Below, piece by piece: positions 6,586 through 61,007 of a stretch of 64,000 nucleotides of DNA. Below the pieces are notes generated by a model. The model was not told where the DNA came from. It made no database searches and saw nothing but the letters and a program-made list of their open reading frames with translations. The first letter of the stretch is position 1, and the number at the start of each line of letters is the position of its first letter. Both the position numbers and the translations under genes were made by a program. Source of the stretch: Perkinsus chesapeaki ATCC PRA-425 (taxonomy: Eukaryota > Protista > Perkinsozoa); the NCBI GenBank assembly GCA_013115145.1, contig JAAPAO010000011.1:1-64000 (forward strand), read 5' to 3'.

Positions 6586-7900
6586 TTAGAACGCGAAGTC
6601 AACTCCTTGCCGTTGGAAGGCCTAAGCTGATGATACTGCTAACATCTACGTGCTTAACTGACCATAACGATATCGTTTAGCTTCGGCAGACGGCCTGCTT
6701 GCAGTGTAGACCAGATAAGAGTATTCCCCTTGTAGATCTCGAACGCCCCTACAGGAGATATGCACCTCGGCACTGGTTGCCCCAGTACTACCAGTGTTCA
6801 TTAGGATACCCTGTAGAGTAGAGCCTATGAAATAGACCGCAAAGAACGAAGTGAATTTATTGTCTTGCATGCTCTTCACCAAGTCAGGCGTGGGGATACC
6901 GATAAAGCCGCAAATGGATTCTGATAGTGACGTCCTGGTAGCGTCGCCATCGGAAGACGTTACCTCCAAAAAACACCATCGCAAACAGGAATAGCTGCAG
7001 CATCCCTATAAGAGATGATATATGTTTCACGGACTCCGAAATGGGGTACCTTGGGAAAGAACATCTTTTTAGGGGAACGAAATAAACCTCGGGACTACAG
7101 CATAGCCACTTCGAGCTCGAGAGCGCAGGGTTCTTTGAAAGAGCCTCTTCCTATCTAGTGAATTCCGAAGATTCCTAGCTCATGGGTAAAGTAGGTTCGA
7201 ACTATTGCTATTGTTATGATGAAAGATGCCCAATGGTAGTGGAGTTCAGATACGCTGATCTTTCTAGGCTCTCGAGAATATAAAATATCTATGCGTTTAT
7301 AACAGAAAAGCGGTTTTATTGAGAACATATATATCCACAGTGGACCATCCACCGCAAAGGCTCACACAGGGATCCTTATCTCAGTTATTACTCGACGCCT
7401 CGTATGTCCAGTATCGAAGTAGACTTCTGGTCCAATAATTGAGCTACTTGTTGGAATGCTCCACGGAAAGATCAGCTCTGGCAGAACCTGTCCGCGAATG
7501 AGCCCCACTCGAACGGCGGTTGCCTACTGTATCGTAACCTGGTCCTCGGGCATGGCAACATCAAGATACTCCCTATGCGGAATATCTTCCCCTTGCAGAG
7601 CTGACTTGAAGTATTCTGGCTTCATAGGATTCGCCTGAGTAGACCTCATTCGTCACCGGACCGATTGGCCTCCTATAAATGGCCCGTTTACTGTACCCTT
7701 ACAATTTAATACCATATTATATATACTTTACCCATATTGAACTATATTGCATTGTACTCTAATCACATATCAAATATAGTCATATTCACTTCTTGCTAAA
7801 ATGTCCTAAGGACACTGTCCTTTATGCCTTATTACCATCGCTAGTCCACAGAAGAGAGCCACAAGTAAGCAAAGCAGGTATAACCTTCGATTAAAGCTTC
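6586..7900 (-). CDS. SELENOT: Selenoprotein T (Rdx family) with in-frame UGA = Sec at 7472-7474; multi-exon; start codon unresolved
   Basis: The spliced product includes RRLYLLCLLVALFCGLAM|ANPMKPEY...DQVTIQ|FCQSUSFRGAFQQVAQLL...GVE|YPISESVKHISSLIGMLQLFLFAMVFFG|...DNKFTSFFAVYFIGSTLQGILMNTG|AFEIYKGNTLIWSTLQAGRLPKLNDIVM|AFQRQGVDFAF*. This matches the SelT CxxU motif, TM hairpin and TGAFEI...WS...GRLP motif. Confidence 0.92.
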
Positions 7901-8088
7901 TCAGAATGGTAAAAACAAATACTAACAGATCCGCGAATACAACGATACCTATATCTAAATCTATATCTATATCTAAATAGTTCAATTCAGTTCGAGGTCA
8001 GGTCTACAAATCTTGCACTCACTTGCATTTCCCTTACCGAATCGGGTCTTCGCGGATTTTGAGAACATCAACCTTTTTTATCGTTATT

Positions 8089-10940
8089 ATGAATCCCGAT
8101 CTCGGTACAAAGGCTGCTAAGGCTAGTAACCTCAAGAGAAGGGAGCTCAAGGCCTCTGCTGCTAGGGAGGATCAGAACTCTAAACACAATGCTAACAAGA
8201 TACTCGAAAGCTGGCTCAAGATTATGCGGTAGCACAGTGAAAGATACCAAGCAGGTTGATTGAGCGACCATTTAGAGCATACAAGGCACAGCAGCTCAAG
8301 AGAGATGTCGAAATAATATCGCAGAACCATGAAAGAGACGTTGATAGAAAAGACGCGGTTTTACAGATGCTCGACCGGGACCTTGACGAAGGTGCTCCAA
8401 CGCTTGTCTTCTTTCTGACCTATTTTGGATCTTTAGCCGAAGAACAGCATCAAGTGGCAATACGGTCTGTATTTTCCGATATGGATACGTTGGTGGAGAT
8501 CTTCCAAAGGAAACTGCGAGCTCAAAACGACAAGTTCAATCGGCAAGTGAGATCGACCTTATTTTCGCCAGATCATGTTTTCTTTCATCGTTGCGGAACT
8601 GGTCTCCGCCTGTGCGCTTCAGGATAGTATCCACGAGCAATAAAAATCGGCAGTTTATTATCGCAGATTGCTTACTGCCGACTTCTATTAGAGAGTCACC
8701 TAGCCCCATAGAAATGTTCCTTTTATTGTACGAGAAAACTTTTGTTTAAACATATGTTCCAAAAGGATACATGGAATGGATTCGCTCTACGGCTCCTACC
8801 ATAACTACTCTCAGCTGCTTCTAATGAAGGAGGAGTTCGACACAGAGCGGCGACGGTTGGTGGACCAGCATGGCCAAGAAGTCGCCGAGCTGAACTCTGT
8901 GATCGAGCAGGTGACTCGGCGCTGTATTGTGCATGGTGTTGTAAAACGGATTCAGATTGATGCGATCGAAAAGGCAAGGGAACAGAACGACCTGGCAGAG
9001 CATCAAAGCAATTATGAGATGATACGGAATAGGGATATTGAGGAGGACCATCAGATGCGATCTCATCTCGAGGAACAGATAGAAATACTTAAAGTCGGTA
9101 TAGAAGTGGCTCGGGATTCCTGGATACAGTGCAACAGAACTACCTAGATGTTTGACATATATTGTATGTTATTATACATGATTAGTTATATACTAGAGAC
9201 AGGCGCTGAATACTATGTACTCGGCCGCATTTGTGAGCCCATTTACTATTATATACTGGGACGTATACATGCCACTCAATCCAATGAGACACTTGATTTG
9301 AGTCTCGTAGCCTCCATCGGTGCCTAGTCTAGTGGAGCTAGGTGCCGATGGACGTTGCTGTACTTGTCAGGATCGATGTAATGCTCAACTGGCCTCATAT
9401 AAGCAGGCAACAGATGCCAACACTGCTGACTACAAGAACTACTTGGAACGTGATCGTAAGGGAACTCTCTAACAGTACCATCATTCCTCCACCACTGGAA
9501 GGCATTTTATCGAGTCAAGTTGAACAGAAGCTTCGGCAGGTGGATCGCATTCAGAACGATATTCAAGATCTCCGCCTCAAACTCGACCAGGTGGTGATGC
9601 CCGATGAGTGCCAAATGGCTTACTAATTTCAGAATCGAACGGAATGGGAGGGCCGAAACACTCAACTTAAACGAGAAAAGGAGCAAGTCAGGAAGCACCT
9701 GGCTCAACTGAAGGCCAGGATGCACACAGCCAGGACTGAGGAACATTCAAGGTGTCAACATTGTAGCCTGCCATACCGCTCCGTTGTTAACTGTACGGTC
9801 GATATGCCTTCGGAATATACGAAACTACCCAATCAGAGTTTTCTCGCTTTTTAGTGAATTTCCCGCAGGTTCGTCGACTTATTGCCTGTGAATGCATAGT
9901 CAAATCCGCAGTGTATTCGGGTATTGTTTTTTGCGACTAACAATCGATTGATTTTAGGATGCTGGACTTGGTGTCGAACGCTGAAGGATGCAAACGACAT
10001 TTGAAAGGGCAATTCGAACGAGAGGAACGTATACTGAAGCTGGCCGAGCTATGCAGGAAATTCGAGACGGAGCGAGAGAAGGTCTTGCCGTTCTACACTA
10101 ATGCAGATATGAATGTGGATGAGATAGATTTCGAGGTAGTAGATGGATGGAGTTTTGGAATAGCAGTTAGTTTTATGTAGATAGGATGCTCTATTGTATT
10201 CTAATATATAATATTATTATACAGCGTGAACGAGTCATTGTGGTCCTTAATAAGGACTCCTTATTGTTCAATCCGTTATCGTTCAATTCTGCTACTGTTT
10301 TTGTTTATCTGATTGCTAGAGGAATGAAGTTGTGTAGAATTGACCGAACAAAATGAAATTAGATTATAATTATCAGTACGCCACATGCCTCTTTGAGCAT
10401 GTATGTTTACCGTAATAAATAACAACTACTGCTAGTATCTCTCTTAAGAACGAAGATCTTCGGGAGGAAGTGCGAGACGTGCTTAAACAGCAAGCCAGCA
10501 ACTGTGCAAGCGGCTGCGATGAGACGACTTATCTTGACACCTTCTTCAAAAAGGTAAATCAATTAGCATTTTTCTCGGTGAAATCCTCCCCATTTGCAGT
10601 TTAATAAAATCCAGCTTGACACGCTGGCAATCGAGGCAGAGCAAAAACGACTGGAAACCGAGCGACATCAACTTAGGGATATCCTAAAGCAGTTCGTCGA
10701 CGGTAAATCGGGTTTTGAAATCATCGAGAGCATTTGTGGCAGGTGTTACCGTGAGTCCAGAGGTGCTCACTAAACCTAACCCCTTGCTTATAGTGAATGG
10801 CAGAGTCAATCTTAATCAAATGGGAGCCAGACAAGCTGCGGGTCGGACAGAACTGATGGAAAAATGTTATTGTGGCCGTCGCAGGTGCCGGCTTGCTAGG
10901 GAAGCCTGTTGTCCAGGAAGCTCAAGTAAAATTCAAATGA
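8089..10940 (+). CDS. DRC2: Dynein regulatory complex subunit 2 (CCDC65), multi-exon
   Basis: It contains the hallmark segments [34 protein letters not shown](A)[33 protein letters not shown] and [22 protein letters not shown]. Confidence 0.9.
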
Positions 10941-18700: not shown

Positions 18701-21700
18701 TCAGATCTGTGCCGCAATTTCGCACGAAATCTGTCGGAGGTTTGGTCTTAGAAACTTCGGAGGCGCTGAAGTTTTCTACTGGCTGGAAGAATACACTACC
18801 CACAACTCCTCCGATGGGCACATTAAATCTATGTCTCGGATTCAGATACGCCTCAGTGATTGTTGATCGAATCGCCGTACCTATATTGCAACTGCCGCCA
18901 ACTCAGCCTTATGTTGTCCTATTGAAATACCGTATCATGATGGTAAACTGCGAGAGGCCAGTGTTGTCCCTTCATTCTCTGGTTCAGCTTCTCCGGACAT
19001 GGGCAGGAGAGCTTGCAACATCCCAGCGAGTTGAAGTGGCTGTGGGGGCCATGGGTAGATGCTTGGAATCAAACCAAGAGCATCCTGGGGTAACCAGAGG
19101 GATTTTGCTTGTGATTCTCAAACAGTGTGTCTTCGTTGGAGATATATGTATATATATAAGATATTTCCCGTTTGGTGCGAGGAGGGTAAAAAATTTCAAC
19201 CTGTACTTGATTTAGTATATTTCGACCATCTCGTAGAATAAACAGTTATTAGCTACTTCACTGGGTAGCGACTGTATAAGCTGTAGCGTGGGCAAACCAT
19301 GAGAGAATGGCAGCGACTGTTTCGGTCGCGGACAGGGGGGACCTAGAGTACTCTATGTCTCACGGAGCCTTGCTAGCTTCTAGATAACGGCAACAACATC
19401 CCGGAAGGGCCTCTACATTAGATATAGCGTCGGCCAAAATTTGCCGAGAGGGGCTCGAAGTAGTTGCAAGTCAAACAAGAAATGACTAATATCTTTTCGT
19501 CTATCATTTTACCAATTCGATACCAAGTTTATTGCTACTTAAGGTAACCTCCTTTTCAAGGTGTGGAATTATCTGACTAAGATCCCATATTGGTTACTAT
19601 ACCATTATTAAACGTAGTATTCTCTACGGCTCCTTCCCCGTAGGTTCGGTTCCAAGCAGTGCTGAGTCTACGTTCCTTATTTGACCGTGATCCTGAGCAT
19701 CCTGTGTGGGTGTCCAACGGCCTTCTACGCGGTATCATTGGCCGAGCTATGGACATGCTTGGGTCATCTGGTGGTGTCAATGTAAGTCCGAGTCTCTCGC
19801 TCAATGCCCTATGTTTTGTTTCGAGGTACCTGAGGCACAGTGGCGGCTTCTGACTGCGGTGACGAGCTTCGTGAATGAGAGTGAGCTCAGCGATGCGCTG
19901 CAGATGCCACTATTGCAGAAACTGGTACCACCTTGATCCGTTAGTGAGCCCACTGTCTGTCAGGTTGATCTCTGGCGTAGTCCCAGTACAGATGAGCTGG
20001 TAAAGTTTGCCCTCTTGGACCTGGTCAAGGGACTCCTAGCTAATTATTATTCGGCCTCTACTGTGAGAAGATTTCCCCATTCTCGATTGCACCGGTACGA
20101 TTCCATTTTAGTATTCTATTGGTAAGGAGCTGAAGACCTATCCAGCTGTGATTGAGTGTAGCCTAACTATTGCCATGGATGCCTCTGGCCTCGCTCCCAA
20201 CCAGCGTAGGCTATACAGAAGCCTCCTGTGCAGCGAACTGGCGTTATGTCAGCACCTTACCCTTCCTCGACTGGGTCTAGTCCCACCTGTTCTCCGCTAA
20301 GAGTTGGCCGATCTCAGCCAAATCCACCTCCGCCATCGCCGGTTAACCAAGGTAAGTCTGGCGATCAAGCTTGCTCCTGAGTCTATATATCAGCTACCAT
20401 AACAGGAGCGTTGTCGGCAACACAGGGAGCATGCTCTACTATTAAGGAAGCCGGCCTGGCTCTGTTGGTCAGTGTGCTCCGGGCTGTGCGAGGCGAGGAT
20501 CAGGTAAAATGTGTTCGCAGGGTAGAAAACCTGAAGCTTCTCTATCAGGTGTCCCACGTCTTGCCGCTCTTCTCGCAGTGCCTTACCCGATTCTCACCAG
20601 AGATTGTTGAGAGTAAGTCGACCAAATAAAGTTTCAATGCAGTATAATTTTTGCAGGCCCCGAATTGAACGAAGTGGATATCGATCTCATCACTGAGTTT
20701 GTTGCACTGCATCTCCTACCCGACTACAACCCTAATGCCGCTGAGGCGGTTAAGTCGAATCCTCGGCAACAGTTCTCTCCGCAAGGAGCAGAAGCCTTAT
20801 CACATCACTCCGAGGCAATCGCCAGAGGAATTAAACAGGTGGATGTTTCCAAACATTTTTACTTTGTTTCATGTCGTGCCTCAGCATCTCCAGCATCGAA
20901 TAGATCTATATTCCCAAGATCCCACCATGAACGCCCCGAAGGCCGCTGACGATCGGCTAGCGGATAAAGTATTTCGGTAAGTAGCCCTTCTTTAAGTGAT
21001 CGGAGTCGTGACTTGCAGGTTGGTTCGTATGCTATTAGTCGTTGATGGCCGGCTAGTGGATCAAATCGTTTTCCCACTCTACCAGGTAGGCTCTTCTGGC
21101 CGCCTGTAGTTCTTATGGACTCTCAGCACTTCATCACCTTCTTCCCAGCAGATCGATCGTCAAGCAGGTCGTCCTCCGCACCACTCTATCCGTGAGCTCA
21201 GCCAGTGTGAACCACTTGTCATTTGATTAAACAGGTTCCGGGAAGAGCCTTTGCTGATGACATTCGCAACTGCTATGGCGCACCACCCTCAGAAGTTCCT
21301 AGCGCTCGCAGCCAGTGGTGGACTAGAGTCTGTGGCAGTGGGAGCCCAGAAGATCATGGGATGTAAGTGCAATCGTTCTGAGGGAACTTCTTATGGTGTT
21401 GATCATCACTTAGTGATGCCACTGGGCGAGCGAGGCTCTACGTCTCCTTCTCGGAGAAGTACTGCTCTACTTGCTCGATCGTTTGTCTTCATTGTCGTCA
21501 TTTAGGCTATTTGCTGCCGTCGGTTAACCAGCGATGTTTGGTTTTAGCTGTGCCGTTGATGCTGTTGTCTGCAGTTGCGGATAGCAGGGTTTTGGGCGCG
21601 GATGCCAAAGGCTTGTGGGTGTCCCTGTGGAATCAGGTAGGCGGCCTTGATTCGAATAAAGCTGTTATGTTTCCTCTTTTGTCAGTTGGATTGCCTTGTA

Positions 21701-50860: not shown

Positions 50861-51890
50861 ATGGCGAGTCGATGGCTCAGACCTGGCCAGGCGTGTCTAC
50901 GGCGCCGCAAAGGTGTCCGGTGTGCCTCTACACGATCCAGTGTTGATGAGAACGCCTTCAACCTTATGTTCGATTTAAAGGACGAAAAACGGAACCATCT
51001 CCGGGAGATTGTCGACGAAGTGAGGACCACTTCCGATGGCAATGGGGGCGAATGAGTCCTCAGATCATGACGCTTGAGCTCCGGGATGCTAAGGACCTGG
51101 CAGACCTGCTAGAGGCATCTATTGAGAACCCTAGTGAGGCGCTGGTAGCACGGCGCGATTAAGTTGCTTATAGGTTTTTTGGCAACCACTGTGGTGCCCG
51201 GAAGGCGACCCTTTCCGCATCCTATGCACATGTTCTCTGCCCTGGATGCTGCCACGCGGCCGGGGATGTATCAGCCCTATGGCCAGGGCGGAATTTTGCC
51301 CCAAACAACGGCGCCGGTTCAGCATGAGCCGCCGCCTGCCAGCACCCAAGGACCGAGTAGCTCTGTGGTGGGGGTTTTGCCAGTTTTGGTGTCCTCAGAG
51401 GTGCCTCAGGCAGAGTCTGAAGCACCGACTGTGGAGGAGACCAAGAAGGCAGCGGCCAAAGCGGACAGCACCAGTGTGGTTACATTGAAGCTTATCGGTT
51501 ATGAGGACGGGAAAAAGGTCACCGTGGTGAAGGAGGTCAGACGCCCCTGCTCTATAATGTGTACGTAGGCTCTTACTATAGGTCCGGGCGCTACTGGGCC
51601 TGGGGTTGAAGGAATCCAAAGACATGGTTGAGGAACTGCCAAAGGTGAGCTTGATCTGGTGGAAGATTGAGACTCGTGGAACCAGTAGAATGAAACGATG
51701 AAAAGTTAAATTAAGATATTTTATAACTAGGCAAGATAGGTTAAAATAAATAATATGATAAATGGGCATTTTTCGGAGGGTGGACATGGGGCGGCGTTTA
51801 CAGATACTTAAGAAGGGGATGGACAAATCTGAGGCACAAAAGGTGATAGATAAGTTCAAGTCGGCCGGGGCGGAGGTCGTGCTGGCCTGA
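50861..51890 (+). CDS. MRPL12: Organellar (probably mitochondrial) ribosomal protein L7/L12, multi-exon
   Basis: Arg-rich presequence, IMTLELRDAKDLADLLE, and the C-terminal domain VTLKLIGYEDGKKVTVVKEVR|ALLGLGLKESKDMVEELPK|...KSEAQKVIDKFKSAGAEVVLA*. Confidence 0.9.
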
Positions 51891-51944
51891 CATGTCCGCC
51901 TTTACTGAGGGTGCTGGCCTGACATGTCCGCCTTTACTGAGGGT
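51879..51944 (+). repeat. Perfect 32-bp tandem duplication spanning the L12 stop codon
   Basis: GTGCTGGCCTGACATGTCCGCCTTTACTGAGG occurs at 51879-51910 and 51911-51942. Confidence 0.95.
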
Positions 51945-52016: not shown

Positions 52017-54799
52017 ATGACCTATTTCGCCAACCCAGCCGGGCAACCCCCTCCTCCGCCTGGCTCACCTCCACCCGCCGCGGCCCCACCTCAGCCTGAG
52101 TTTGGATACCATCACCAGCAACGGCACCAGTGGTCACGGGTACAGTGGGCCGCGGCCCAATGGATGTGCTCTACTGCGTGGTCGTTTCAGCCCCAACCGG
52201 CTCTACCGAAAGCAGCGCTGGCCCATCCTTCAGCCGAGGCAACATCGCCGGAGACGTCACCAGTGAGTGTGGCATCGGCACCGAGTCCACATGACAGCGA
52301 TGGTAAAAGGGACGGCTTAGGAAGAGCTAGATCACTGAGGCCTCAGGGAACGTCACTTTCGGAATGCCTCATAAACTTGGGGCCCGGCGAGGTCTGCCAG
52401 CTGGGCGAACTAAGAAGCGGCGTAAGAATCACATCCATTACTATGGATATTTATGGTTAAGGGCGGCGTGCATCCTCATTTCGTGCCGCGCGGTCGGATG
52501 ACGATGGGAGCTCTTCCTCCAGCGCTAGCTCCCCTGAGGAGGGCGGAGAATCACCGAGTCACCCGCGAAGGTCTCAGTCGTTCCACCCTTTGCTTTCGGA
52601 AAAGTGTGACTCGAGGGAATTTAACGAGCATGAGCCGAGGCTCCTCGAGATGGACGGACCATTGTGGTACCACCTGCACCGTGGTTTTTATTTCCCCCAG
52701 TGGTGCTTTCATCAGGCCCTACTGTGGGCGTAGAATTGTCCCAGTTAGCCCGATTATGCATCTCTCGGCTGATGTGGTTTGTAGAGTCTCCAAGGTGATA
52801 GCATCTGAAAGGCGGTACTAGTGGGAAGGGGAGCGTCGTCGGGCCGGGCCGGGCCATTTCACGGACAGGTGCATAGCTCTTGATGTTGTCGGTGTTCCGG
52901 CCCCTCGGTTACCCGAGGGGGATAGTGGTGGCCATCGAATTGTGGTGGACCATCTTGTCATCGCAACCATGCATGGGGTCACTGTTATTGGCCCGCCCAC
53001 CGCCAAGGGAGACCATAAAATGTTAAGGGACATGCTGGCGGCTCAGCTCATAGGCCATCTCAAGGTGCTCGCCAATTCCTCATTGCCCATTGGTCTTATC
53101 ATCCCGCTCAGCTATACCGTAATACGGTCCATGTAGTGATACCGCGGGCCGACACTGTAGACCGGACGTGCCGCTTTCTTGGGCTTAAGCACGGTGCGTG
53201 TCGGTAGTGCATGGTCCGAGCTAGGATATCCTCCGTAGGTGCCTTGACAGGCATGATCAATGTAGTGCAGTGGGTACGTAAGTGGGCCGCGGCCAAGAAG
53301 GCCCACGGTGCAGCCGTCCTAGCGAAGAGCATCGTGGCGGTAGGTGGCCAGATCGGACATGTTGTGGCATGCCGATCCTCAGGGGCTTGAAGCTTCGGGC
53401 GGAGGGGAGCTCTCGGTCGAGACTCTGTGCAACTTCTTCCTTCCGTACAAACCACACTTCACCGGTCCTCCGACGGAGAACGTCGAAAGGCTGCCTAAGC
53501 ATGTTCGTTCGCACGCTATGGCTCACGTAGCATTCTTCACACGGAAGGTGGGTGGAGGAGACGGTCATCGCTGGGCCAGGTGGCGCCTTCTTAGGTGTTC
53601 CTTATGTTCTTCACGCGGGCCACGGATCCTGACGCATCCACTGTTGCTGCCAGAAGTGATGATAGTCGGGAGGAGGAGTGCGTATCCGTTGCCACATCGC
53701 AGCCAGAGCCGGGTGATCCTACCACCACCAGTGGCAAGTCTCCGATGGCCGCTTTGTCCGGGGCTGATGTCCAGGACATGGCTGGTGTGGCCGACGGCAT
53801 TCGCCAGCTGCGACAGGGCAACAGCGGTGCTGTCCAATGCCCCCAAGCTACCTAACTATGAGTTTCTGAGCTCCGCCAGGCTTGGGTTCATGGCCCTTAT
53901 CTTTGGTGTCCCATCAGACCGCGTTGATGCATGCTGGTGCTCCAAGGCGAGGTGCCCTCTCCTCCAGCCCGGCCCCTAAGACTCCGGCACGAACCCTCAG
54001 AGGTGGACTCGCCAGCCACAGGCCGCCGCCCTCGCGTGGGAAGGCTCTACCGGTTCGGGGTGGTATGATGGCTGCAGCTAACGTTACTTCGCTGCGTGGC
54101 CGGCGATCCATTGCGAAGGCTGGCACAGTGGTCCGGGCCACCTGGAAGCCGCTGAGCTCTCGAGGAGGTTTAGCGTCTCCCTCTGCCGCCAGCAGTCGGG
54201 TCTCGAGGAGCCCACTAGCTCGGTATCCTGGCAGCGCCCCTTCCACCACGATTCCTCGCCCGCTTACTGTCACACGAAGGCGAGCAGACCCTCCCATCGA
54301 CCTCACTGGTGACAGCGAGCCTTCTGCTCAGCGAAGCGCAGCAAGGGCTCGGCCATCGTCCCCTCGACCGTGCACTGTTTTGCGTAGCCCACGACCCTAT
54401 CTGTCCCCTCCGGCTGGTCAACCAGTAGTTAGGCTTACCCCAGCGGCGGCGGCAGAGCCTGGAGTGGTGACACCTTCTGTGAAGGTTTCTCCTTCGGAAG
54501 GACCGCCTCCGGCCAGCACTATTCTTAGTGTGAAAGAGAGAATGGAGGTCTTGAAGGCGAGTCTTGAGGCTGCTGCCGAAGCTGGGAAGGCAGCCCCGAC
54601 CGTGACCGAGCACGCGAGTGGCCAGCTTTGTCAGAGGACTCGAGACCCTTCAGCGTCTGAGCAGGTGGGATTTCCAAGCAGTCTCGTGGGGGGGAGTCGG
54701 AGCTGTGTTTTTAGAGAGACCCTGACACTAAGGATTCCCCATCACCGCGACCAGACAGCGCCACGGACAGAGGCGCGGGAGAACGGCTACCGACGCTGA
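52017..54799 (+). CDS. Low-complexity protein with a degenerate DEDDy/EXD-like 3'-5' exonuclease domain (paralogue 1)
   Basis: Pro-rich N-terminus, spliced RVSKVIASERR|CIALDVVGVP...HLVIATMHGVTVIGPPT, then ELSVETLCNFFLPY...VERLPKHVRSHAMAHVAFFTRKV, then a Ser/Pro/Arg-rich tail. Boundaries are tentative. Confidence 0.55.
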
Positions 54800-55109
54800 G
54801 CCCTGAGGAGAGAGCGTCGTTGGCCACGTCAGTGTTGTCCTTCATATCCCACGAATTGAAAGCCGCGGCCCTGTCCAGAATGTATCTGTGCCGATGACTT
54901 TCGGTAATGTACGTATGCCACCGCTGAGCGGTGTTGTAGAATTCATACTGTGCCGAATTACTTGCTTTTTCATTGCTCCACATGGATTGAGTTTCATAAG
55001 CCTCGGGAGGGGGAGGCTGCCGACTGGAGCGCTGTCTTTCCTTACAGTTGACTACTGGTCGGCGACTATCACACCAGGACCATATCCACCACTGCGGCTT
55101 CGACTGTCC

Positions 55110-58100
55110 ATGGCCAATACGTATGATTATTATGCTGGTCAAGGATATGACCAACAACAGCAGCTTCAGGCAGCAGCAGGAGGAGGAGGGCAGCGGTTTC
55201 TTATGTCCTCGTCCTCCTCCACAGACCGTTCGTTGCCGCCTTCTACGGTCCCTATGCCTCTGCCACGATACCCTTCTCAACAGTCTTGGGAGGAGCCCCC
55301 TCGGCATCATCATCATCAGCAGGATTATGCTTCTCGTGGCCCTGAGTCGTGGGGCACCAGCGCCAACTATACCGGTGCCAACAACAACGACCCTCAAGGA
55401 TGGTATCAACGTGGCCGCTATGAGACATCCTACTACCCCTCCGACCGCCTCGGTTACAACTCTAGGCCTATGCAGGCCTCAGCAGTGCCTCATCCGCTAG
55501 CTCCGCCGACGTTTCCAGAGTCGGGTTGGCCGCCGCCTCTCGGCCCTACTGGCACCACCCTACCTGTGGCCAAGCCCCTGCCGCCTGATCGCTCTCGTGG
55601 CTATCAGGATTTGGATGCAGCTCCTGGAGACTCCGGCAAAGGATCGAATAGAAAAGCTTCCGCTGCTGCTGTTGCCGGCGGCTCCCGACCATACGGTTCT
55701 GACGTTCCACAGTCGAAACCACAGCAGCCGGCACAGAGGATCTGTGGGTTGCTGACGATGATAGATGCCTCCAGAGGCTTCATCCACTCCAAGGCCACCG
55801 GCCTGTCGAAAGTGGTCTTCCATATCAGTCAGTGCAGCAGCGTCCAGCAAAAGCAAATGGTAAGCATGATAATTTCACCGAGTGAGCTGTCTGCTGTTTT
55901 AGTTGATCGACCGTTTTAAGCGTAATGCGTCACTCGCCAAAGATATGCCTGTAGCATTCTCCCTGGCGCGGCACCCTAATGGGACCTGTGTGGCCAAGTC
56001 GGTGACCCTGTACTATGTGAAGCCTCCAGCTGGCCAAGAACAACGACCCCAGGTCAGATCTACCGTCATCCTTCTAGATAGCTTACATTCAGGCCACATC
56101 TGCACCGTCGGGTACACCAACGGAAGTCCTTGAACGAGCGCGCAAGGTCCAGGAGGCCGCGGTTGCAGCGGTGGCCTCGGCCAAGGCACTGTATCCGACG
56201 GCTAAGCGTGGTAAGGGCTCTGGGCCGAAGGCCTCGGGGAACCGGAAGAAGAGGAGATCGTCACCTCCACATCCGCCGGCTCCTCGTAGAGGGAAATCGT
56301 CGAGCCCGAAAAAGGGCGGAGGGATTATGGCGTCTCCGCGTGGCTCGGCTCCGGTGAGGAGGTCGTTCCCTCCTGCTACTGCCAAGGTGGGTTCGAAGCT
56401 GATCAAACGCTGACACTTTGGGTGGTTCAGGCAAGCGAGGCGAAGTCCCCGGGTAAAGCTCCGCCCCCTTCGACACAGCATTTGGCACCGAACGATCTGG
56501 CGAACCCGAATGCTCCCATACTCGGGGCACTTGCACAACTGACTGTCCCTCCGGGATTCCCACCACCGCCTCCTCCTCCGTCGGCCATGCCACCGGCAGC
56601 GAGTGCTAAAAGCCCGTCTAAAGCAAAGCAGCAGCCCTCGGCTCCGACATCATCGCCGGTGGTCCGGGATTGGCGATCGAAGGGGGCATCACCGAAGGCT
56701 GAGGGCAATAAGGACTTCTCCTACAAGCAGTCGGCTGAGCATCCCCTGCGGCTGGTGAAGGCTGGAATACCCCCGAAAGTCAAGTCACCAGCAAAGATCC
56801 CTCCGAAGGCGCCACAGGAGCCTCCGAAGGATGCAATTGAGGTCGAGAAACCTCCGGCCACGGACAAGCAGGAGCCCGAGGCCCCGACGCCCTCGAGTAG
56901 GGTGGTGGTGCTGGCCGTCCTGTCAACCGCTTCTATTCTATCATTAGGTGCACCCGTCACTGCAGAGCCGAAGAAGCCGGCAGCACCGACGCTACCAATT
57001 GATAGCAGGACCGAGGCAGAGAAGGAGAAGTCGCCGACCACCGGGGCCAACAGACGATCGATGTCCATTACTTCTGCCGCCGCCTCCAGCGTGTCCCCGA
57101 TATCAGTGGCCACACTCGTCGAGTAGGCCTCACACTATGGCCAGTTTAAAGATCTCGTTTCAGAGACGACCGCAGGGGTGACATCCCCGAAGATGATTTG
57201 GATTTCACTTGCGACAGCGACGGCTTTGCTCGGGGCAATGTAGTCTTTAAAGAAGGATGGTTGCCCATCGACCCGTAGGCCACCGGCTTAGGCAGGCCCC
57301 CCAACGCTCAGCTTCCCCACTGTAGGCCCAACGTTACAGTCACCCTTCTGGGCAGCACGTGCGAAGATGTCTCCAGAGCCATACGGCGCATCTGTGCTGA
57401 GAGATCGTGAGCCTTTCCGCTGCCCGGTGAAGCAGCCAATACGCTTGTCAGTTGCGTATCTCTGGAGGTTGTGGACGTCCCCATCGAGCGTGGGTATTCC
57501 ACGAGAAGCTCCGTGCTGGCCATTGGAACGCGTCACGGCGTCACAGTTCTTGGCTGCGATGGTCCGACCACTGGGAGGGCTTCAAAGAGCGACAATGAGG
57601 AATGGACGGTGGCCAGGACTGTCTTGGCAAACCACCTCTTTGGCCGGGCCTCTGTACCTCACCGTCGAGCTGCCTCGAGGACGCATTCCGCTTCAGAGTC
57701 GATCCTCCACGGTCCCGCTGGTCGTCGGCACCTCAAATGGCGCATCTCGACTTTGCCGTTTTCTCGGAATGCACGACCTCTCCAGAGAGGAGACACTTCA
57801 GTGTGTCGATATTGTGGATGCCATAAAGAAGATGTTGGCACAGTCGGAGAAGGGCGGTGGCCAAGGTCTGCCACCTCATGCAGATGTGCTGATCAAGGAC
57901 ATTCGTATGGTAGGCATTCCGCAGCAGCGGACTCCGGCCTGTGGACGACTTGCCCCTATTAGTTCCACGATGCTCGATCGCTTCCTATCACCTTATCGAG
58001 TCTGTGCAATTTCTTCCACCGGCCCCACCGAGTACTGCTAGGATCCACCAGGCACTCCAACCGCGCCTTCGACCTCGGCCATGTAGCCTTCTATACCAGA

Positions 58101-58626
58101 CGAGTACAACTGTGGGGAACCACTTCAATCAGGAGGCCTTCGTTGGTTAGGTCTTCCAGCAGTTTAACAAGCTCTTCACGGGCAAGCCGACAGAGGCACG
58201 AAAGAGGAAGCGTCCAGCAGCATCAGCAGCCGCGCCAGCCGCCGACCCCAGGGTACTTTTCCGTCCGCTTCCTCTGGGGGTTGGTAGGGCCTCCTCCTCC
58301 TCCTCGCCGCTGCCCTGCTGTTCTTCTTGTTTGCCAGTTAGAGGAGGCTGCAGTGGTCAGGTCACGGGCTTTGTTGGCAGGTTCAGAGCAAGCAGGCTGG
58401 CGCTAAGCAACCTATCAACGGTAGCGCGATGCCTAAGACTACCGGGGGAGTGGCAACAATCGATGGTGAGGTAGGGCGATCAAGTAAGGTTAGACGCACT
58501 GAGGGCAAGGGGACGGGGCACAACGGAGCCGGTGGTCTCTGCGAGGCTGACAGGAGGCTCGTTAGAGATGCCGTACTGAGTTTTATACAAAGGGAGCTGC
58601 AGGCGAGCAAGGACCGTTGGACCTGA
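55110..58626 (+). CDS. Low-complexity protein with a cold-shock-like OB domain and a degenerate EXD-like exonuclease domain (paralogue 2)
   Basis: Q/G/Y/P-rich N-terminus, CSD-like ICGLLTMIDASRGFIHSKATGLSKVVFHISQ...LAKDMPVAFSLARHPNGTCVAKSV, then RAIRRICAERS|CVSLEVVDVP...VLAIGTRHGVTVLG and LGHVAFYTRRV. There is an apparent frame discontinuity near 58030-58070. Confidence 0.55.
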
Positions 58627-58839
58627 GCTCGCTTGCGCCGCCCCGAATCACTAGTAATATTAAAAAGGTCTTCTAATCTGGTGGGATTATGGTGGCTGCC
58701 GACAACTCTGTCGTGGCCATTATTGTTTATATCATTTGAACGTATACGTACTGTTCCACAAGGATCAGTTCCAACACTATCGCACTGTTGCGTTTGAGTA
58801 TCCCACACGTGGGAGACGTGCTCCTCGTCAGTCACCACT

Positions 58840-61007
58840 ATGGCCTCCTCCTCGCTGGCCAGTCGTCATCAAAGCACCGACCGGTTCCGTGTCTTGCCAA
58901 CTGCTGACGATGCCCAACTCGTCCATCGGAAGGCGCTATGGGATGCTCGAGGATGTGAGCAACTGGGTAGTGGCCTTCGGTTGGTGACCTCCATTTAGGT
59001 AACTTGACCCTGAATGAGTCGGACCTCACGGACATGTCAAATGACGTCCTCGTCGACTACCTCCGAATACTCTACTTCAACGACATTGATATCTACTTCT
59101 TGCTGGGTAACTCCGACAGAGTCCAACCGAACAGACCGATATCCTACGAAAACCCCTGTAACGAGCGGAAGGCTCTCTTCGTGGCCAAGAAGCTGCTGGT
59201 CGCCCACGGTGCCTCGAGCCAAAGAGTGGCAAAGCTTCAGGCAAAAATAGATACATTTTGCGGCCCAGCGAATGGTGTTCATGTCTCCTCTACCTGTGAG
59301 GAGATTGTCCCTTACATTTCTGAGGTGGCACCAAAGTGCGAGGTGGGCAAGAGGCCTTCTAACCTCGGTGGAGGGGTCGGCTTGTACGCCAAGGAGAATG
59401 TCTCTGCTGGTAAACTACCCCGTAGCATCGTGCTCTAGCGCTCCGGTTCAGGTGACGTTGTCATCAGGGTTCCCGAGGGAGACCTCCGCATCATCAACAT
59501 CTACGAGGCCGCTGCTGACCCAGAGTTCGGCCCGGTCGTGGCGGACCTGCTGGCAGCTGGGCACCACATTGACACCTGTCTACTGCTGTACTCTCTACCC
59601 CCTTCGTGGCGTCTCCAGTGCAGCTCTCAGATATCTCGTCCACGTCTACAAGTCAGCCAAGCTCCGCTCGTTGCCTTCAATAGCGTCCTTCATACAGTAC
59701 CTACCCGAAGAGTTCTCTGGCAATCTGATGGAGTGGCCCCTCGAAGCCTTAGACGCCCTCGGGATCCCCCAAATACGGCGGCTGGTAACCCCCTCAGTTC
59801 GCTGCCTCGCGTCGATCACTCCCTTTCCTAAGGTCACACAACAGATGGATCTCCTCTGGGGGATTCATCGAGCACTGCCGGCCGGCCTGTGTAGCAGCTT
59901 CGACGAGGAGCTCTTGTGGGCGCGGTCCCTGTGTGACAGTAGAGCTTTCGCGCTGGATGTAAGTCTCTTCTTTGGCACACTTTGATTAACGCGCTGCTAA
60001 GTCTAGCATTTCGTATTAGCTTGTGAACAGTCCTGGTCTACCATATTTCCGCAGGTGCCGCCACCTACTTGGTGCCCCCAGTGGCTGGAAAAGTACCTCA
60101 CACCGGAACAGCCAATCACATGCGTGGTAAGATAGTCCTCAACAATTGTCGATAAGCCACTAGCAGATCCCTGGGGCAGACCTCCTCAACCACCACCAAA
60201 GAGGGCAGTGCGGCTTCCCTCGGTTCGACAAGGATAGCCGCTCCTTCGTCATCACCGCCGAGGCCAATGTCCCCGCAGGCTCCGAGCTGTTCATCAATTA
60301 TGGCGGACTGCAGAACTGGGAGCAGCTCATGTAGGCAGTACGCGGATTCAAAGAAGTTACAAAATCTCAAGTCCCTTTCGCATTCCTGGGGATCTATCTG
60401 AGACTCATCAGGTATTACGGTTTCTGTGAGTTCTCCCAGAACCCCTACGACTCTGTCACTCTCGACTTAGCCGCCCCAGGTGCGCAGGACGGCCTGCAAC
60501 TCGACACCATAGGTCGGTGTCACCCATACCTCTCCACCTCGTCGAGCACCTCCGATCAGGTACAGAACACGTCATTCGGAGGGGATCCCCGACAGTATCG
60601 CCGAGGCTCTGGGAGGCCCTCACTAACATGGCCGGCGTAGAGCATCCTGAGGAACTTGAGGAAGGCGCTGTAGACTCGTTAGTTGCTCTACTTAGACAGG
60701 TCAGATCGTCACTTATCTGCATTGGTAACTGGACTGCGACAGGTCACACTCGCGCCAGCTCCCGAGACGTCCTCTGCGAATGACTGGTGGATGGACGACT
60801 ACGGTGAAGTTATTGCCAAAGTGAGTGCTCTTCTGGTCCTTCTTGGCCATCGTGTGCGCTCAGTTCCGAAGTTCACAAATGGCCCTTGTCGACGACGCTG
60901 AGCGTGTGCTCCGTGAAATGGTAGCGAAGGACAAGAAAGCCAGAGCCGTCCATAGCGGAGGGCAGGCCGGCTATCGGAGAGCGAAGGCTTTTAGGAAGAG
61001 ACGATAG
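58840..61007 (+). CDS. SET-domain protein lysine methyltransferase (Rubisco LSMT/SETD3/SETD6 class), multi-exon
   Basis: GGGVGLYAKENVSAG|DVVIRVP, LLWARSLCDSRAF, PGADLLNH, AEANVPAGSELFINYG..QNWEQLM|YYGF and NPYDSVTL. Confidence 0.9.

Follow-up and report, generated by a model that had tools for sequence, protein, structure and literature searches.

Introduction

The first 64,000 nucleotides of contig JAAPAO010000011.1 of Perkinsus chesapeaki ATCC PRA-425 (assembly GCA_013115145.1; this whole stretch is called the window in the following) carry two neighbouring genes on the plus strand, here named gene A (52017-54897) and gene B (55110-58626). They raise the question whether a nuclease-type domain has been maintained in this lineage as a binding module rather than as an enzyme. 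The original prediction, made from the sequence alone, described a tandem pair of genes for large disordered proteins which share an apparently dead DEDDy/EXD-type exonuclease domain, and suggested that they could be lineage-specific RNA-granule or silencing proteins. Perkinsids are the sister lineage of the dinoflagellates, and Perkinsus species are parasites of shellfish, P. chesapeaki of clams. Nucleases that were turned into RNA-binding modules are mostly known from animals and fungi and comprise Exu, Egl, EXD1, Maelstrom, Ssd1 and PML.

In our study we followed up this prediction computationally. We propose, with a probability of roughly 0.55, that genes A and B are ancient tandem duplicates of a Perkinsus-only family whose shared domain has a divergent DnaQ/DEDD 3'-5' exonuclease fold without the two-metal catalytic set, and that this domain serves as a binding module in ribonucleoprotein (RNP) scaffolds. 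If this is true, the conserved pseudonuclease pair would represent an independent alveolate case of a nuclease turned RNA-binding module. It would also provide an entry point to the so far poorly known regulation of RNA in Perkinsus.

Two tandem paralogues with a shared domain

Both genes encode a common domain of about 230 residues, located at 52605-53620 in gene A and at 57210-58180 in gene B. In either case the position was taken from the motifs, the exon map and the ESM Atlas, for gene A from its structure neighbours there. In the public spliced models the two copies are 30% identical over about 226 residues. BLASTP returned an E value of 1e-19 for A against B of P. chesapeaki, and of 2e-20 for A of P. 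olseni against B of P. marinus. The proteins found in P. chesapeaki were KAF4677597 (gene A) and KAF4677599. As far as sequence comparison goes, the similarity between the two domains is far beyond chance. Here and below, full-length sequences are the public models, and searches with sequence of the window used one exon at a time.

A tblastx comparison of gene A with gene B gave a series of colinear blocks, namely CxxL(D/E)VVxVP, LxIxTxHGVTVxG, TVxxVV...RxCRFLG, LSxxxLCNFF and HVAF(F/Y)TR(K/R)V. Together with the BLASTP result this confirmed that two tandem plus-strand paralogous genes share an ordered domain, as had been read from the motifs, and the positions given earlier for CIALDVV (52870), CVSLEVV (57453) and the His of HVAFFTRKV (53524) and of HVAFYTRRV (58080) were all correct. 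The CRFLG block (53103-53186 in A, 57688-57771 in B), which is found in a different frame because introns intervene, is an addition to the blocks of the original prediction. The same applies to a conserved C-terminal helix, (A/D)xxSVLSFIxxELxA, which tblastx pairs about 300 codons past the domain blocks. In gene A it reads LSPEERASLATSVLSFISHELKAA (54796-54867) and in gene B LCEADRRLVRDAVLSFIQRELQAS (58537-58608), the latter being kept in P. marinus.

Moreover, four introns occupy the identical alignment column and phase in A and B. Introns and exons were called by reading the sequence and from the exon map of the public model KAF4677597 of gene A. The first shared intron (A 52815-52868, 54 nt; B 57407-57451, 45 nt) is in phase 2 and splits the codon preceding the first Cys, so that the common position and phase noted earlier for this intron were borne out in both genes. 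The other three are in phase 0 and lie at 53065-53111 and 57654-57696, at 53340-53382 and 57910-57962, and at 53548-53594 and 58104-58150, respectively; the last one measures 47 nt in each gene and is placed between TRK and VF in gene A. A further intron at 53199-53243 is found in gene A only. The exons of the domain in gene A are approximately one that ends at 52667, then 52710-52814, 52869-53064, 53112-53198, 53244-53339, 53383-53547 and one that begins at 53595. In gene B they are 57165-57274, 57326-57406, 57452-57653, 57697-57909, 57963-58103 and one that begins at 58151. Both genes lie on the plus strand, contain short introns and are separated by 212 bases.

Conservation, selection and distribution of the family

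The gene order bL12, A, B and SET, which comprises the two neighbouring genes described below, is identical in P. marinus, and gene A is intact there. In P. olseni a single model covers bL12, A and the beginning of B; since this model runs A into B, the tandem order is kept in this species as well. We also noticed that the intact gene A orthologue of P. marinus ATCC 50983, at about 7448-9900 of GG671811.1, is unannotated.

To describe selection, the proportions of nonsynonymous (pN) and synonymous (pS) differences were determined exon by exon against P. marinus, with codon counts pooled across exons. The pN values were 0.117 for the A domain and 0.101 for the B domain, and 0.28-0.29 for the flanking low-complexity exons. 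Synonymous sites were saturated (pS 0.72-0.83), which gives a pN/pS of about 0.13-0.15 in the domain. Strong purifying selection is thus centred on the domain.

When the whole 41.7-Mb assembly of P. chesapeaki was searched in six frames with profiles of two different exons, these two copies of the family were the only ones found, which supplies the genome-wide count that the original prediction had left to be made. The profile of the first domain exon was also run with HMMER, in an exhaustive search, against 1.84 billion representative proteins. Four clusters proved to be true members, and every one of them comes from Perkinsus: A and B of P. chesapeaki, B of P. marinus (XP_002786444) and A of P. 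olseni. The P. marinus B protein has 908 amino acids and natural ends, and it finishes at a natural stop. A word search with the domain of P. marinus B retrieved the two B orthologues and nothing else. Judging from these searches, the family is restricted to Perkinsus and has two copies per genome. In a literature search we found no paper describing it in Perkinsus.

Predicted fold of the shared domain

From modelled structures, we estimate that the chances of a DEDD-like fold of the domain are roughly two in three. Residues 575-815 of P. marinus B, as modelled in the ESM Atlas, came closest in structure to clusters of RNase D, 3'-5' exonuclease/HRDC, Rrp6 and the Pol I exonuclease, with template modelling (TM) scores of 0.54-0.59 and 166-183 residues aligned. 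The feature search with the same model reached 0.92 to a cluster bearing PF01612, and 24 of 30 hits fell into the exonuclease set. Similar results were obtained for P. chesapeaki A (residues 318-545), where PF01612 and Pol I exonuclease clusters were nearest (TM 0.54-0.60) and structures outside the DEDD group reached only 0.35-0.47. Across both paralogues the alignments comprised 163-183 residues. The feature hits of P. chesapeaki A belonged to other DEDD or RNase H-like families, with the arenavirus nucleoprotein (NP) exonuclease, which is the C-terminal domain of NP, as the best one (0.88), followed by RNase_H_2 and a WRN-like exonuclease; because these scores ranged from 0.85 to 0.88, we treat the hits as leads only. 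A hidden Markov model (HMM) built for this purpose from 33 canonical PF01612 domains (30 bacterial and three from Perkinsus) gave a marginal local match in P. chesapeaki A, IATMHGVTVIGPPTAKGDHKMLRDMLAAQ, which aligns in the expected register with the beta2/beta3-alphaA part of this HMM (P 0.016-0.046, equalled by one of 400 shuffles, score at most 0.6 bits). The order of elements in both AlphaFold2 models, that is hairpin, helix, beta1, beta2, beta3, a long helix and helices over CRFLG, LCNFF and HVAF, fits the DnaQ layout as far as such models can be read.

Several observations weigh against this fold. Its support is of one kind only, language-model structures and embeddings; the ESM models have a low mean predicted local distance difference test (pLDDT) of 0.45 and 0.50 over the whole proteins, and two paralogues are not independent tests of a fold. 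AlphaFold2, which had been proposed together with Foldseek as a check on the exonuclease fold, did not corroborate it: the models of P. marinus B (4 sequences, pLDDT 36.8) and P. olseni A (5 sequences, pLDDT 34.5) were unusable, and searches with them in Foldseek and VIA-align, which are uninformative at such pLDDT values, gave no meaningful match. Scans of the exons and the full models with Pfam, NCBIfam and PHROGs left the domain unmatched, and hmmscan with PF01612 found nothing in the exons and four full public models at E values up to 1. A six-frame scan of the genome with PF01612 at E values up to 10 picked up 11 exons of ordinary exonuclease genes in other places, but the window yielded no hit. 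The family profile hit only bL12 among the PDB sequences, by way of the mis-fused part of the public model. With hhalign, five Perkinsus PF01612 domains gave no match, and the 33 canonical domains gave a probability of 0.2-0.3%, with a score of 14.9 that was equalled by 36 of 150 column-shuffled controls. Paralogue B was not matched at all by the canonical PF01612 HMM.

Further searches concerned related families. A scan of the P. chesapeaki genome with PF00929 showed nothing in the window, and a word search with a Perkinsus WRN-like domain gave two hits. The matches listed for a word search with E. coli RNase D were enterobacterial only, with at least 88% identity, and were useless for a profile; a search for related loci ended in the same way. 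Besides, an NYN/PIN-like domain was considered and dropped, as no structural or feature hit pointed toward NYN/PIN.

The DEDDy/EXD-type fold of the original prediction is supported in part, by the ESM Atlas structures of both paralogues, and received no support from the sequence and profile methods. The alternative is a new, Perkinsus-specific alpha/beta domain without any relationship to DEDD exonucleases, the likeness in fold being an artefact of single-sequence prediction. That no sequence or profile method ties the domain to PF01612 or another family, that AlphaFold2 was unable to fold it and that the exhaustive search found it in Perkinsus alone all speak for this alternative. However, the ESM models of both paralogues specifically match DEDD exonucleases, with TM scores well over those of the next folds, and the order of motifs and secondary structure is consistent with the DnaQ layout. 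We consider a new domain unlikely, but it is the competing explanation to be taken most seriously.

Catalytic residues

Under the preferred reading of a divergent DEDD fold, the elements of the domain would follow each other as a strand-helix lead-in, beta1, a beta2-beta3 hairpin, alphaA, beta4, the ExoII helix and the ExoIII helix. The predicted beta1 corresponds to CIALDVVGVP in gene A (52870-52899) and CVSLEVVDVP in gene B (57453-57482; LDVVDVP in P. marinus). In the five public models, the DxE motif of the first strand is absent in every register, and all members read L[DE]VV[GD]VP. In the motif register, the first acid of beta1 (D or E) is kept in every member and Val stands at the position of the Glu of DxE. 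The absence of DxE described earlier was hence confirmed. The gene A motif LVIATMHGVTVIG (52954-52992), which was identified by tblastx and from the AlphaFold2 secondary structure, is predicted to form the beta2/beta3 hairpin.

The region equivalent to ExoII in gene A contains VVIPRADTVDRTCRFLG (53136-53186). Here paralogue A has a candidate Asp in the motif register (P. chesapeaki and P. marinus share ADTVDRxCRFL, and P. olseni reads TDVL(N/D)R, with N or D), whereas paralogue B reads SNGASRLCRFL without an Asp. Sequence comparison thus suggests that paralogue A, but not B, may have retained the ExoII Asp. The region equivalent to ExoIII comprises LSVETLCNFF and HVAFFTRK in gene A (53407-53547). 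Neither Yx3D nor Hx4D was found in the last helix of the five public models, nor in the exon of P. marinus A that encodes the ExoIII region. The motif in this place is H-x-A-F-[FY]-T-R, that is AH[VM]AFFTRKV in paralogue A and GH[VT]AFYTRRV in paralogue B. The proposal that the final Asp had become His has to be revised: in the motif register the His of HVAF falls on the Tyr of ExoIII, and the Asp would appear to be replaced by Phe or Tyr. The mapping of residues by motif is uncertain by a few positions, which counts against this assignment of the lost residues.

Taken at face value, the catalytic set would have been lost by Val in place of the Glu of DxE, by an ExoII Asp that is present at most in paralogue A and by H-x-A-F-[FY] in place of Yx3D. 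Since the catalytic residues are absent, RNA binding would be more likely than RNA cutting. Several other residues are invariant in both paralogues, namely an E before beta1, the D/E in beta1, the H of HGV, the C of CRFLG, the C of LCNFF and the H of HVAF.

Comparison with known systems and proposed function

The closest predicted structures of both paralogues are the DEDDy exonucleases of PF01612 (RNase D, Rrp6, WRN-exo, Klenow exo), which the Perkinsus domain resembles in predicted fold, in the order of elements and in the acid of beta1. It differs from them in lacking detectable sequence or profile similarity as well as DxE and Yx3D, and paralogue B also lacks the ExoII Asp. The same P. chesapeaki genome carries ordinary PF01612 genes elsewhere. 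We observed among them two near-identical canonical genes in tandem, about 2.5 kb apart (G000:C3170:18411-18998 and 20882-21460), with intact DxE and Yx3D-type motifs.

EXD1 is a DEDD-fold RNA-binding adaptor, and Exu and EXD1 are catalytically inactive. Egalitarian and Exuperantia have been described as RNA-binding adaptors with a DEDD fold (PMC5785220). In these proteins an exonuclease-like domain inside a larger adaptor is used for binding rather than cutting, and this is what we propose for the Perkinsus domain. However, the Perkinsus proteins do not contain the SAM-like domain of Exu, the Lsm domain of EXD1 or the dynein-adaptor motif of Egl, and they are restricted to Perkinsus. Homology to EXD1, Egalitarian or Exuperantia was not detected: Pfam finds only the mis-fused bL12 and SET domains in the public models, and the exhaustive search finds only Perkinsus. 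The PXL of PML is described as an exonuclease-like module that binds nucleic acid, within a protein which builds nuclear bodies (PMC13659232). The resemblance would be one of analogy only, an exonuclease-like nucleic-acid-binding module within a nuclear-body scaffold, as PML belongs to an unrelated lineage and has other flanking domains.

By analogy with Exuperantia, Egalitarian, EXD1, metazoan Maelstrom and the PXL of PML, the Perkinsus domain may act as a module that binds nucleic acids or a partner, not as an enzyme. Each protein would consist mostly of low-complexity sequence around one folded domain and end in the common, presumably amphipathic helix. The low-complexity arms, together with a possible cold-shock-like oligonucleotide/oligosaccharide-binding (OB) module and patches resembling a nuclear localization signal (NLS) in gene B, would make the two proteins candidates for RNP scaffolds.

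The metazoan MAEL domain has a DEDD fold without catalytic residues and binds single-stranded RNA (PMC4408791). Like MAEL and the arenavirus NP, in which the DEDD fold carries an ECHC zinc site, the Perkinsus domain has invariant Glu, Cys and His residues. Nevertheless, the order and spacing of its Cys and His differ from E...CxxH...C (PMC4408791), and an HMG box is missing. The Maelstrom family of Pfam (PF13017) did not match the public protein models, and a scan of the P. chesapeaki genome with it showed nothing in the window, but its controls gave nothing either. A more elaborate form of our proposal would be that the domain is a Perkinsus-specific, DEDD-derived module in which the invariant Cys/His/Glu set has taken the place of the lost carboxylates and holds a structural or regulatory metal, much as the ECHC zinc site does in Maelstrom and arenavirus NP but of independent origin, and that with the OB module, the prion-like arms and the C-terminal helix the two paralogues form a heteromeric scaffold of RNP granules or RNA silencing that only perkinsids possess. 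We regard this version as an improbable one.

The invariant residues could also be read in another way, namely as the remodelled site of a DEDD-fold nuclease that is still active and uses the conserved Glu/Asp, His and Cys. Several polar residues are indeed invariant in both paralogues and all three species, the first acid of beta1 is always kept, and paralogue A has its candidate ExoII Asp. On the other hand, paralogue B is without this Asp, and the ExoIII Asp is found in no member. To our knowledge, all characterised DEDD nucleases require the full carboxylate set, which counts against activity. In Maelstrom, loss of the carboxylate set abolishes activity (PMC4408791). An active nuclease therefore appears very improbable to us. 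Finally, the idea of untranscribed debris, for example of a transposon, with artefactual gene models is effectively refuted. In its favour, neither end of the public models is correct. Against it, three Perkinsus species have kept the open exons, the splice sites, the synteny and the domain sequence, the domain is under purifying selection with saturated synonymous sites, and the genome contains only two copies.

Further features of genes A and B

Gene A extends from its ATG at 52017 to a TGA at 54895-54897 and encodes about 790 amino acids after splicing. Its start, MTYFANPAGQ, is kept in P. olseni and P. marinus, and its last exon (54715-54897), which was read from the sequence, agrees with the tail of the P. 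olseni protein. The coding span of gene B runs from an ATG at 55110 to a TGA at 58624-58626, and the P. olseni model starts with MANTYDYY. The gene ends given earlier were retained except for the start of gene B, which is now placed at 55110.

The low-complexity flanks of both proteins are rich in P, S, A, Q, G and K or R and have a very low pLDDT in both AlphaFold2 models, in agreement with the P/Q/S-rich disordered surroundings described before. In gene B the N-terminal low-complexity region (55110-55733) is rich in P, S, G, A, Q and Y and prion-like in composition, with a pLDDT below 50. It is followed at 55734-56040 by a possible module resembling a cold-shock domain (CSD) or OB fold, with GLLTMIDASRGFIHS..KVVFHISQC and ..PVAFSLARHPNGTCVAKSVTL, which an intron at 55860-55902 splits into two parts (55734-55859 and 55903-56040). 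In the AlphaFold2 model this module is predicted, with low confidence, as beta-beta-beta-alpha-beta-beta. Its identity to the N-terminal half of E. coli CspA is 26%, with GF and VVFH at the positions of RNP1 and RNP2. The CSD family of Pfam (PF00313) did not match it in the protein scan or in the own-genome scan of the window. Just past the exonuclease-like domain, gene B encodes a basic patch, RKRKRP (58199-58216; RKRKRQ in P. marinus), that resembles an NLS and may function as one. A second NLS-like patch, RKKRR, is located at 56240-56260 after the OB-like module.

Annotation of the locus and neighbouring genes

In three species the public annotation of this locus is faulty, with fusions to bL12 and SET, a skipped exon and an unannotated orthologue. 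Upstream of gene A, a gene for a mitochondrial-type ribosomal protein bL12 is located at 50861-51885 and closes with a stop codon of its own (51883-51885). In the public models of P. chesapeaki and P. olseni, splicing bypasses the last 12 codons of bL12 and thereby joins it to gene A. In P. chesapeaki the resulting model FOL47_000552 skips the exon at about 52462-52667 and ends at 53852, and because of the fusion gene A bears the name 'bL12 C-terminal domain-containing protein'. At the other end, FOL47_000554 begins at an internal Met (55254) and splices past the stop of gene B into the gene for a SET-domain protein. As the family is invisible to Pfam, its members are therefore labelled "bL12 domain-containing" and "SET domain-containing" at present.

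The SET-domain gene lies downstream of gene B at 58834-61004 and is a separate gene of 551 amino acids in P. marinus. Besides, an exact tandem duplication of 32 nt with 2.1 copies was found at 51879-51944, where it overlaps the stop of bL12 and the start of its 3' flank.

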